Shown piece by piece: positions 29,474 through 61,367 of a stretch of 64,000 bases of DNA; the first letter of the stretch is position 1, and the number at the start of each line of letters is the position of its first letter. The stretch is from Caecitellus pseudoparvulus. Its lineage: Eukaryota > Protista > Bigyra: Bicosoecida. Position numbers and translations under genes: made by a program. A model generated the notes under the pieces. The model worked only from the letters and a program-made list of their open reading frames with translations. It was not told where the DNA came from and made no database searches. The stretch spans positions 62,001 through 126,000 of the forward strand of contig CBFFRQ010000013.1 in NCBI GenBank assembly GCA_965644315.1. Direction: 5' to 3'.

Positions 29474-29525
29474 ATGCATTGCCACGCTAGCACCAGGCGG
29501 CCTTGCGCGCGGACAAGGCACGATC

Positions 29526-30271
29526 TTAGATCAGGAGGGAGTGCGCCCCCCCCCCCGTCGTGCGGCGCAGGGTCTTGTTCACGCCGCCCCCGCCGCCCTT
29601 CCGTGGCCGCACCGAGTCAGCCTTGGCCACAACCGCCGGGTCCACCGTGTCCAGGTACCGCCGTGCGCTGTCCAGAGCCCGGGCGTTCAGAGCCGCCTCC
29701 CGTGGCGTCATGCCCAGCTCCCCCACCCTGGGCTCGGCCATCTGTGCCTCCAGCGCCCGCCGCTCACGCTGCACCATCTCACGCTTGTGGTCTGCCGCTG
29801 CCTGCTCCCGAGCAGCCAGGGATGCCGCCTCCGCCGCCGCCAGCTCCACTTCCCGCCGCACCTCAGCCTTGGCAGCGTCCGCCGCGGCCGCCTTCTCAGC
29901 CATCTGCGCTCGCAAACTGGCTGCCTGCTCAGCCTGGGCGGCACGACGGGCGGCGGCTTCACGGGCCTCGCGTGCCTCCAGTGCAGCCTCTCGCTCAGCG
30001 GCGAAGGCTGCCACCCGCTCCTCCTCTGCCGCCGCCGCCGCCGCCTGGCTCGCGTACGTGTCAGCCATGCTCTCCAGGGTGCTGTGCAACTTCCGCTCAC
30101 GGGCGGCCATGTCAGAGGCACGCGCCGCTGCCTGTTTGTCCAGCAGCTCGGCGTACTGCCGCATGAGGGCGCGATCAGCTTCCGCCTCCGCCTCCGCCTC
30201 AGCTGCCTTGGCCGCTCGCAGGGTCTCGTTCTGTGCCAGGAATGCCCGCAGCTGCTTCCGCTCGGCTTCAC

Positions 30272-51457: not shown

Positions 51458-54110
51458 ATGGAGCCCGAGTCCGAAAGGCGTTCGATCCCACTCACAGTGC
51501 GCTGCCACGTGTGCGGGGAGATAGGCCATCGAGCGGGATTCCGCGATTCGGTGTATGTTGACTGCCCCAACCGGGCTTGCTACTTGTGGTGCGTGCACAG
51601 CGAAACCCTGACGTGGTTTGCTCGCCAACGTCAGGCCCACCCCGCTGGCCTTGTCCGCTCACAGCAAGCAAGACGGCCACACCACGATGACTTGTCCCTA
51701 TCGAGCAAAGCCTGGGGATGGCAAGCTTGTTCGCAACATGGACGGCAGCAGCGTGCTGCGTCGGCTGCAGCAGCGGGAGGAGGGTCTCACGACGCCAGCG
51801 TCCACCGTTGCTCGGCGCCTAATGCGGGCACGGCGCCACCTGCCACGCCCTGTGACACACCTGTGGCAGCAGCCCCAGCACTGGCGCGTGACGTCTGCGC
51901 TTGTGAAGGTGCACTCCCGGCGCGTGACGGTGCTGGAGTTCCACCCACACCGCCCCGGCCTCCTGCTGAGTGGTGACAAGTTCGGAGAGCTGTGCCTGTG
52001 GCGCCACGACACGACGCAGCGGGAGGTTTGGAGTCCTCACCGGTACCTCGTATCGGCGCTCTGCTTCGGCGTGCGCGCAGAGGACAATGGCGTCTTCACA
52101 GGCAGCCAGGACGGCACGGTGAAGCGTGTGGACCTGACCACGCACGACAGCACGCCCCTTCTATCCCTGAACCCGGCTGGGTGGCAGGGGCGCCCCAAGG
52201 ACTGGCGCATGGTGCAGAGTGTGGCGGGGGATGAGCGCTGCCTGTGGGTGGGGGACGACGTCGGGCTGGTGCACGTGGTGGACCCCCGGGCAGGGGGCGG
52301 GGGCCACCGCGTGCAGGCCTCCTTCCAGGCCCACGCCAAGGGGGACAAGGTGCAGTGCTTGCACGCCAACCCGGGTGTGCCGTGGCTCATGGCCAGCGCA
52401 GGCAACGACAAGACTGTGCGGGTGTGGGATGCGCGCATGCTGGGGCGTGCTGCCAGCGCGTCCGCCGGGTGGGGCGTGCCCGGCACGGGTGCATGGTGGG
52501 CGCCCCAGCCGGCGGGCGGGGACCCCACCCCAGTGCTGACTTTGCAGCACTCCAGGGCAGTGAGCTCAGCTTTCTGGTCGCCCGTGTCAGGGAGGCACCT
52601 GCTCACGACGTGCTTGGACAACCGCATCCGGGTGTGGCATGACGTCATGTGCAGCGGGTTTCCTCAACGCTCAAAGGCACAGCCACCGCCCTCACCTGCT
52701 GCCAGTCGGGCTTCGGATGATGCATTTGCCTCCCCAAGCGTGCATGCGCCAGTGCGGGGTGGTGGCACTCCTCGTGCAGTAAAGAGCGGTGATTTGAGCC
52801 TTGGCGAGGCGGTCCCACCTCCCTCCACCACGCTCATCCACAGCCACGACTATGGCAGGTACCTGTCGCCGTTTCGGGCGGTGTGGGACCCGAAGGACAC
52901 CCGGGAACGGCTGATCGCGTGTGGGCGGTACATTTCCGACAGCTTCGGCGGGGTGAAGCTGCACCCCGTGGATTTGCTGGATGCCAGCGGAACAGCGGGG
53001 GGATCTGGTGTAGTAGCTCAGCTTGTGGACCCCATCGTGACGACCATCACACCCGTGACAGCCATATCCCCACACGAACAAGCAATCGCAGCGGGGTCCA
53101 GCATGTCCCTGTTCTTGTGGAAACCTGTGTCCGCTGGGAAGCAGCGTGCTGACGGAGTAGGATCGGGCGAAGGCGACGACACGCCAGCCACCGCATCAGC
53201 CGATCGCGACCAGGCCACACGCAGCCCTGCGCCCTCCGACAACACACCTTGGTGGGAGCTCCCAGAGCACTGCCTTGTGGAGTCCCCCGTGAGCAAGGGG
53301 AGCAGGGGGAGCGGCAAGAAAGGCGGCAAGAAGCGGCAACGCAATGCCGCCGCCGCCTTCACTGCCGCTGCCGAAGCAGCACTTGAGGCCCAGCCCCCAG
53401 CACCAGAGGTACTGCTGCTGGACGGGGCTGAGGGTGACGTCCAGCCATACAGCATGCAGGCAGCTCTGAAGAAGGCCCGGCGCGCGACCCAGGCAAAGGC
53501 GCGCAAGGCCATGAAGACCACGGCAGCGGGCGACTCTACATCCCAGCGATCTGGGGCGTCGAGCGAGCCGCGCAAAACTGCACAAAAAGGGACAAAACGA
53601 AGAAGGAAAGCGACTGACACCAACGCCAGCGTGGCAAGTTCGCAGGGCATGGCTCCCGCGTCGCCTGCACCGGCTGCGTCCGCACAGCGGCGGCCCTCAC
53701 GGCGCAGCAAGGGGTCTACGGCAAGTCCACCAGCTGTGCTCCCCACCTCACCACCTTCCACCAGCAAGTCGAAAACAAGTCCGTACTTTGATGCACAAGC
53801 TGCCGCTGACCAGGAGCTTCCAGGTGGCGCTGCGGCGGACTTGGCGAGGTTCGCTTTTCGGGGTGGCGGAGACCGAGGTCGAGCGGCACGGCAACTGTGC
53901 CGCCCAGACGCGCCGAGCAGCACTGCATCTACACTGAACACGTCCGCAACTTTAACCCAGCCCTCAGATTCCGCTGTGGCAGGCGGCCGCGGGGTCCTGA
54001 CTGGTACTCAGGAAGTCAGCGACAGCGACAGCGAGGCAGGGGACTTCACGGGCCCTGCCGCGCCGCCCCCCGAGGCGCCTGAAGGCACCAGCCCCTACTT
54101 TAAGAAGTGA
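51458..54110 (+). CDS. DDB2: DNA damage-binding protein 2, plant-type with N-terminal zinc knuckles
   Basis: CHVCGEIGHRAGF...YVDCPNRACYLC|KQDGHTTMTCPYR, HSRRVTVLEFHP, WDAR, HSHDYGRYLSPFRAVWDPKD...GRYISD...LHPVD. Confidence 0.88.
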
Positions 54111-54162
54111 CTGCCAGACAAAGCAAATGCATTGGCGTGAGCGGGAGCACAGCTTGCGCTGC

Positions 54163-54234
54163 AGCGCTGCGTTGGTCAGAGGCGGGTGTCCCGTGAGGGC
54201 TGCCGCCCGCCTCGTCGTGACGCTCACTTGCGCT
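54163..54234 (-). promoter_or_regulatory. candidate eukaryotic SECIS element (type II shape, non-canonical ACGA core)
   Basis: RNA: AGCGC..GCGU-CA-CGAC-GAGGCGGG-CGG-CAG-CCC-UCAC-GGG-ACA-CCCGCCUC-UGAC-CA-ACGC-A-GCGCU. Tandem GA/GA at the base of an 8-bp perfect stem, plus an apical mini-stem. Confidence 0.6.
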
Positions 54235-54271: not shown

Positions 54272-54311
54272 GGCCCATGTCAAGGGAAGCCTTGGCTCCT
54301 TAACATGGGCC
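54272..54311 (-). promoter_or_regulatory. 14-bp RNA hairpin starting 6 nt 3' of the in-frame UGA (Sec redefinition element-like)
   Basis: GGCCCAUGUUAAGG / CCUUGACAUGGGCC: 13 Watson-Crick pairs plus one U-G wobble on the sense strand. Confidence 0.6.
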
Positions 54312-54668
54312 GCGCCCTCAAGCCCTGGGGGGCGCCTTGGGCAGGTCCCGGATGCCCATCACGCGAGGGCCACCCCCCCCGCGCCCACCTCTCCCACCCC
54401 CCCCCGTGGCACGAGCTTGGCCGCCCGTGGCAGGGGGCGCTTGTGGCGCAGTCATGCACTTGTACACTGCATACCCGGCGCCGCCAAGCAAGGCCCCCTT
54501 CATGCCGAGCAGCAAGAAGCCCAGCAGCACGATCCCCCCTGCGATGAGGAGCTCCTTCTGGCTGCCAGCACAGGCAGAAGCTTGCGCTGGGACCGCTCGA
54601 TCAGCCTGTCCATCAGCTTGGGGGGCGGTGGCACCGTTGTCGATGCGCCCGTTTGTGATTTTCACCAT
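54300..54668 (-). CDS. small SelK/SelS-like (FAM241-like TM) membrane protein, candidate selenoprotein with UGA-Sec at 54318-54320
   Basis: MVKITNGRI..., TM GIVLLGFLLLGMKGALLGGAGYAVY, Gly/Arg-rich tail GPRVMGIRDLPKAPPRA-UGA-GRGPC-UAA. SECIS-like element downstream. Confidence 0.7.
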
Positions 54669-54877
54669 GGCAGGCGCCTGTGGCAACGCAAGTGAAACGC
54701 CGCGACCTACGTTGCGCACCGAGGAGTCCATGTAGGGAGGCGCGCGCAGATGACAAGCTCCGGAGAGCCGATGTAGTTTGAAAGCTATGCGGGGATGTCC
54801 TGCAGTGCATTGTGCACGATTGTGAGGGGGGAGGGGGGGGCTGTCGTGGCCTCCAAAACCTTGCGTGAGCCAGGCTT

Positions 54878-60153: not shown

Positions 60154-61367
60154 TAGGCCTTTCTATGGCTCCTTCACTGGGAACAAATGCTGCTGCGCAC
60201 AGACGGCGGCGCCGATGCTTGCGGTGCATGCTGCGCGGCGTGCACGGGCAAAGGAGAGCGTGCGTTGACGTTATCGGCAGCAGCGGCATCTTGGGCGCAC
60301 ACCAAGCTTGCGCCGGCAGGCAATGACACTCACGATGCCTCGGACACTCCGCCCTTTCCTGCACCGGTGAGAGTGTGTGCCGCGTGTGAAGAGCCCCAGG
60401 ATGCCGTGTTATTCCCACTGGAGCCTTGGGCGTGTGCAGAGTGAAGTGAGCGCTGGCTTCGTAGGACACATGCCAGCGTGTGCGCGCAACCTGCGCCAAA
60501 GCCGCCGCCGGCAGAATGCACAGTCTTCTTACGCTCTCCAGCCAGCTTACCTGCCATGTTTGTCCACGTGGGGGCCAATCCCAGCGTGTGCCGTGTCACG
60601 GAACATGGCCTGACTTCACTTGCCAGCCTGCAAGGTGTGACGTGTGAATGGAACGTGCCCCCTCCCCCCCCCCCCTGCACGCAGCGTGACGCTGGCTGGA
60701 GCTTGCCGAGGATGTGCCCCGCCACGCGCACTGCAGGCGTCAAGGTGCACCATTCCCGCGGATTTCTCGCCTGTGCAAGGCGCGCACACTACGAAAGGCA
60801 TGTCATTCTTGGCCCTTGTCTGCTCGTGGCTTCGCCGGCGGCAGGTCTGAGGCGTGGGCCCCGTCGTTCGGCACCGCTGCCAGTGGCAGCGCTGCTCTTG
60901 GCGTTGCGAGGAGGCGTGGGCAGGCCGCCCGCACGGGCGCGCAGACCTTCGTGCTCGGCAATATCAAGCCAACACAGGGAACCGCAGCCCCCCCCAAACT
61001 TCATTATTGCCCACCGACCCCGCGGCAGCCTCCGCCACGCTGTCACAGCGCCTCTGCACGCTGCCACAGCAGGGCGGCAAAAACGCCGGTTGCCAGGCAA
61101 CTCGTCGCAGGTTCCAGACGTGCGTGCATTGCCCCGCATCTGCCGTTGCACCCCCGCGGCGCGGTACCCAGCGGCTTGGCGGCTGTGCAAGCATTTCACG
61201 CCTGTTCCGTGCCTCCACGCTGTGCTCTCGTGTGGAGCCGGTGGGCCGGCGCAGACCGCACTTCACTGTGCCAGCGGCGTGCGGCGTCAAGCTTGCGGGC
61301 AACGTCAGGGGCAGCAGGCGGATCGCACGTGCGCACCTTGCACGCTGGCGTCCTTTCACAGCAAAGA

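Follow-up and report, generated by a model that had tools for sequence, protein, structure and literature searches.

A minus-strand reading frame in the genome of the marine protist Caecitellus pseudoparvulus reaches a TGA at positions 54318-54320 of the stretch of DNA analysed here (64,000 nt in full, hereafter the window) and runs on in frame to a TAA, raising the question of whether this UGA ends the protein or encodes selenocysteine (Sec), and what kind of protein would carry it. An earlier reading made from the letters alone (the sequence-only reading) had proposed a 122-amino-acid product extending past the TGA, and translation bears this out: 54668-54300 on the minus strand holds 116 codons, TGA (54320-54318), G-R-G-P-C and TAA (54302-54300), with a C-terminal end of ...APPRA-UGA-GRGPC-UAA. 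The gene comprises the following parts.

54300..54668, minus strand: coding sequence, single exon, 122 amino acids with the putative Sec117, from translation of the minus-strand frame
54639..54668, minus strand: conserved N-terminal motif MV[KR]I.NG.I, a SelK-like and FAM241-like start, from the alignment
54453..54551, minus strand: membrane segment, hydrophobic, spanning residues 40-72 as helix-Gly-helix; in homologs it weakly resembles DUF4605/FAM241
54321..54452, minus strand: Gly/Pro/Arg-rich, mostly disordered tail, closing with the family motif [IV]..I.DLPK.P (residues 101-114)
54318..54320, minus strand: in-frame UGA, inferred Sec117, with UGA in 13/13 homologous loci
54300..54317, minus strand: extension G-R-G-P-C read after the UGA, with terminal Cys122 (UxxxxC), followed by the true stop UAA, from translation

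The ATG stands in a strong context (GCC-ATG-G), and the longer starts upstream (GTG 54881, ATG 54731) were discarded because most homologs in the alignment also begin at MV[KR]I. Removal of the UGA by splicing was discarded as well, since the conserved DLPK motif would be lost with it. Hydrophobicity is high in a single stretch of the protein, at about residues 40-70, where the Kyte-Doolittle profile peaks at 2.1, and a low-confidence AlphaFold model (pLDDT 62) places helices at residues 33-54 and 56-73 with disorder elsewhere; in this model, the membrane segment may be a helical hairpin. The tail up to the UGA (residues 73-116, 44 residues) contains 13 Gly, 7 Pro and 6 Arg. Searches with the window protein gave no match in Pfam and no usable match in ESM Atlas, and a fold search with the low-confidence model was uninformative (TM by query < 0.5).

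The gene lies downstream of a spliced phosphoglycerate-mutase-type gene and converges on a WD40 gene (51618-54110, plus strand) whose 3′ end faces the SECIS element; 189 nt separate the stops of the two genes, and their 3′ UTRs probably overlap within this distance. Contig C117 carries a near-identical copy (L012), probably the other allele, that keeps the UGA, the tail and the SECIS. A contig of a marine RNA library spans 54520-54724 without gaps, covering the 5′ part only and ending short of the UGA, and weakly suggests that the gene is expressed.

Three search rounds returned 15 further proteins, including ones from Pseudopedinella, the diatoms Odontella and Pseudictyota, the cryptist Palpitomonas, and Mantamonas, which share, with variation, an MV[KR]I.NG start, a hydrophobic segment broken by Gly, and a DLPK.P motif. 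TGA occupies the aligned position in all 13 distinct homologous loci with DNA (Odontella and Palpitomonas among them), and in the 11 loci without an intron there, UAA or UAG follows 2-6 codons after the UGA. By our own estimate, which takes at least 11 independent loci and about 50% UGA use, such conservation would arise with a probability of about 5e-4, and because UGA is kept in 13/13 homologous loci, we conclude that the UGA at 54318-54320 is not due to chance. The sequence-only reading had proposed looking for homologs with UGA and a conserved extension, as against homologs with UAA or UAG at the UGA position, and only the former pattern was found. It had also expected standard annotation to truncate the protein, and all annotated homologs do end 0-2 residues from the aligned UGA.

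The short tails place Cys differently, and each is closed by TAA or TAG. Cys precedes Sec in C-U-GPQNV and C-U-RPSMV, follows it directly in U-CA and U-CKV, and comes further on in U-AAC (twice, once in Odontella), in U-SRGSGC and in the UxxxxC endings U-GSRAC (Palpitomonas), U-GSSPC and U-AGRSC; U-GPRSQV has no Cys up to six residues after Sec. The UxxxxC ending is found in L025, L028 and L033, and would also be that of L031 and L032 when their exons, read separately, are joined across an apparent intron that lies at the same position in both homologs.

L031:1086-1177: apparent intron inside the five codons that separate Sec from the stop
L032:1971-2094: apparent intron inside the five codons that separate Sec from the stop

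In both, a GT donor follows U-G-x, and P-C-stop is read after an acceptor further down. UxxxxC is thus the commonest ending of the family (6/14, including the window gene), and the idea that it is a quirk of Caecitellus alone was dropped, as it recurs in Palpitomonas and others; the terminal Cys had been called atypical, which holds against SelK and SelS but not within the family. The position of Cys varies (CU, UC, UxxC, UxxxxC, UxxxxxC), with 13/14 members having Cys at -1 to +6 relative to Sec and L020 having none nearby, and Sec is third to seventh from the C-terminus across the family, sixth in the window protein.

The same tail was observed in a different protein type, charged and helical, showing no clear membrane segment over the stretch that was read: L034 (990-1050), L035 and L037 carry [IK]GVADLPKPP followed by U-G-stop, which may make the DLPKPP tail a Sec module that can be carried from one protein type to another.

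Downstream of the coding sequence, where a SECIS-like element had been noted, an element was found that matches the ACGA type used by this genome.

54160..54232, minus strand: type II SECIS, with core ACGAC/UGAC at 54218-54175, 8-bp helix II, apical CAG and 3-bp mini-helix; the same ACGA core is present in SelK, SelT, MsrA, SPS2 and SelS of the genome

The element lies 99 nt after the UGA, with helix II paired at 8/8 positions; where helix II has a mismatch, a C-to-U change in the other strain and in the allele gives a pair instead. Rfam SECIS_1 (RF00031) had no match at the locus and none anywhere in the genome; it is blind to the window element because the core is ACGA, the canonical core being UGAN/KGAW (PMC3753652). 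ACGA replaces AUGA in all six selenoprotein genes checked in this genome, and the five other elements are located as follows.

L004:2024-2070, plus strand: SECIS with ACGA core, SelK
L005:1407-1360, minus strand: SECIS with ACGA core, SelT
L048:1073-1029, minus strand: SECIS with ACGA core, MsrA
L060:2776-2822, plus strand: SECIS with ACGA core, SPS2
L072:1187-1131, minus strand: SECIS with ACGA core, SelS

The SelK, SelT, MsrA and SPS2 genes have their in-frame UGAs at the expected places, and the apical motifs of the five elements vary (AAG, AAC, AAA, CAG, CAA), that of SPS2 being CAG as in the window element. A rule for such elements (ACGAY, 33-41 nt, UGAH, with no fewer than 7 of 8 pairs and energy <= -15), whose limits were set after the window element had been seen, matched, over 306 kb of the genome, only the 3′ regions of selenoprotein genes and of the allele, once in the window, and gave 0 matches in 3 Mb of Markov background; SelS, found later, also fits the rule and provides an out-of-sample check. 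A loose ACGA pattern was useless, with about 4,900 matches. A covariance model of three SECIS elements, the window element excluded, ranked the latter third in the window and as the best full-length match (15.8 bits, and 20.4 bits for the allele), this being a weak model that missed SPS2 and found no new elements genome-wide. The same model scored short ACGA...GA hairpins at 29525-29566 and 60840-60872 (both minus strand), which are too short for SECIS and probably arose by chance.

The homologs elsewhere mostly carry AUGA or GUGA candidates, clear in L021, L025, L028 and L030 and weaker in L016, L020, L033 and L036, and ACGA therefore characterizes this organism rather than the family. SECIS candidates were not found in homologs L009, L024, L027 and L032, and L031:1357-1412 is a SECIS-shaped element with the non-canonical core AGGA. 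ACGA SECIS cores were not described in the literature we searched.

The genome (30.6 Mb, with a short 18S of 1,697 nt) was searched for the Sec machinery that the sequence-only reading had suggested confirming, and tRNA-Sec (72.6 bits), SecS (E=4e-123) and eEFSec are present, as is an SPS2 (L060) that contains Sec at an in-frame TGA. The fourth component named there, SBP2, was not found in an exon-wise search, in which L7Ae matched only L7a, L30, Snu13, Nhp2 and S12; this does not imply absence, and SBP2 may be strongly diverged or intron-split in this genome. For PSTK, the only candidate is L077 (1501-1821, minus strand), a second KTI12/PSTK-type P-loop kinase. The thioredoxin-reductase-like genes L042 and L043 end in Cys-Cys-Gly, not Cys-Sec-Gly (about 1780-1795), and two GPx genes appear to be Cys-type, with no SECIS, though the organism uses Sec.

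The hairpin that had been noticed after the UGA was recovered by computation.

54272..54311, minus strand: SRE-like hairpin enclosing the UAA, starting 6 nt after the UGA, z -3.7 to -3.9

Comparable hairpins (z < -2) are found in 4/11 unspliced homologs. The SRE of SelN also begins 6 nt after its UGA, a spacing as in the window hairpin, and SelS has a stimulatory stem, SL1 (PMC3628699).

The conserved UGA, the short conserved tail, the Sec machinery and a SECIS matching those of the other selenoprotein genes of the genome all point to selenocysteine at residue 117, and on these sequence grounds we consider it nearly certain that Sec is inserted at UGA 54318-54320. If the UGA were instead a plain stop, the product would be a 116-amino-acid protein and the downstream features would be coincidental. 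UGA is a common stop in this GC-rich genome, and the RNA-library contigs cover the 5′ part only, but the conservation of UGA in every locus, the short conserved tails, the introns that two homologs have downstream of the UGA, each followed by a P-C-stop exon, and the specific SECIS downstream make this explanation next to negligible. Read-through without Sec, by a leaky stop or near-cognate Cys, Trp or Arg with the hairpin as a generic stimulator, would fit the strong hairpin directly after the UGA and the missing SBP2 in the exon-wise search, as well as the finding that a U-to-C change at the same core position abolishes SBP2 binding to human SelN RNA and causes rigid spine muscular dystrophy, a core variant that is thus non-functional in humans (PMC1874613). 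However, the ACGA element also lies behind SelK, SelS, SelT, MsrA and SPS2, whose UGAs are at known Sec positions, and canonical SECIS candidates lie behind homologs. A C at +4 is typical of leaky UGA, and the +4 base here is mostly G; we regard read-through of this kind as very improbable.

As for what the Sec does, we favor, largely by analogy and with fair confidence, a distinct SelK/SelS-type ER-membrane selenoprotein whose flexible tail, with a Sec117-Cys122 redox pair, would serve complexes of membrane quality control, in line with what has been proposed for SelS. The ribosome would pause at the UGA, aided by the hairpin 6 nt downstream, while a diverged SBP2-like factor would bind the ACGA-core SECIS, which would bring eEFSec and Sec-tRNA; Sec117 would then be put in and translation would stop at the UAA, with some 116-amino-acid product probably made at low selenium. 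Placed in the ER membrane with its flexible tail in the cytosol, the protein could cycle between a reduced form and a Sec117/Cys122 selenenylsulfide, much like the selenosulfide Sec188-Cys174 proposed for SelS (PMC3628699). The Sec-Cys arm may act as a redox arm or as an adaptor for ER-membrane complexes (ERAD or protein quality control, by analogy), and the DLPKxP motif probably binds a partner. It is unlikely, in our judgment, that Sec works without catalytic pairing to Cys122, whether in a SelK-like manner (with an intermolecular diselenide, or a role tied to palmitoylation or turnover) or in a different membrane. The variable position of Cys, its absence in L020 and the DLPKPP tail that ends simply in U-G in proteins of an unrelated type (L034, L035, L037) would suit such a protein, but a Cys within six residues of Sec is kept in 13/14 members and UxxxxC recurs in distant lineages, as would be expected with a Sec117-Cys122 pair.

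The gene would add a third SelK/SelS-type selenoprotein family, truncated by databases in every lineage checked, and one whose built-in Sec-Cys pair lends itself to testing with a short peptide. The ACGA core corresponds to the U-to-C change of human SelN-related muscular dystrophy and would offer a natural suppressor system for SECIS recognition, and standard SECIS searches can miss whole selenoproteomes. Set against the eukaryotic type II SECIS (RF00031), the window element shares helix I, the GA/GA quartet, a helix II about 11 positions long, the apical bulge and the mini-helix, and differs in its core (ACGA, not RUGA) and in its apical motif (CAG, not AA).

The SelK/SelS family was reportedly defined by Shchedrina et al. 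in 2011. The present family was not described in the literature we searched, and it may sit among the unnamed subfamilies of that work. Membership is defined by architecture, with Sec second or third from the C-terminus in homologs proper (PMC10650576). The window protein has one membrane segment in its N-terminal part, a Gly/Pro/basic-rich unstructured tail and Sec in the C-terminal region (117/122), but Sec is not second or third from the end. Like SELENOK (SelK/SelG, PF10961), it is small, with an MV.I..G start, one hydrophobic segment, a G/P/R-rich tail and a C-terminal Sec followed by Gly; unlike SELENOK, it has Sec sixth from the end and a Cys after it. A true SelK lies elsewhere in the genome (L004, 38.7 bits, ending in U-G), PF10961 does not match the window protein and, of 16 homologs, matches a single one weakly (E=0.003), and hhalign of the family profile against L004 gave a probability of 1.4%. 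With SELENOS (SelS/VIMP, PF06936), the window protein shares a membrane anchor, a disordered tail, Sec with a nearby Cys and a stem-loop directly after the UGA (PMC3628699), but it has no coiled-coil, and its partner Cys comes after Sec, whereas that of SELENOS lies 14 residues before. The genome has a separate SelS-like gene (L072, ending in G-G-U-G), and the family profile has no similarity to SelS (0.4%). Both orthologies were dropped, given the separate genes and the lack of profile similarity, so that of the SelK/SelS-superfamily assignment made earlier, the architecture and the UGA stand and identity with SelK does not. The gene is strongly supported as a selenoprotein, and its sequence features place it in what appears to be a separate family, widespread among protists, whose architecture is of the SelK/SelS type.

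A FAM241-like membrane segment had also been suggested, and the resemblance to FAM241 appears real but weak: PF15378 (DUF4605) matches 3/16 homologs, all below the Pfam cut-off (best E=1.8e-4), and does not match the window protein. In the ESM Atlas, the neighbors of one homolog are a eukaryotic cluster of 175 members at 0.93, an oomycete one at 0.87 and, third, one of DUF4605 at 0.86, which serves as a lead only. Human FAM241B presumably starts with a very similar motif, which we treat as a lead only. FAM241 proteins have a conserved N-terminus, are ER-associated, have no known function and are reported absent from unicellular eukaryotes (PMC11880036). The literature we searched held no link between FAM241 and selenoproteins. 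We tentatively suggest, as a possibility that we would not expect to hold in full, that the family is an ancient protist Sec relative (stramenopiles, Palpitomonas, Mantamonas) of animal FAM241A/B, where the Sec tail would have been lost, together with a re-specified SECIS reader, since standard SBP2 would be unable to bind the ACGA core. Compared with FAM241A/B (PF15378), in which no Sec tail is described and the membrane segment lies near the C-terminus, the window protein is of similar size and shares a conserved N-terminal motif and a Gly-broken hydrophobic segment; if the link is true, it would provide an origin and a functional hypothesis for this orphan human ER protein family.
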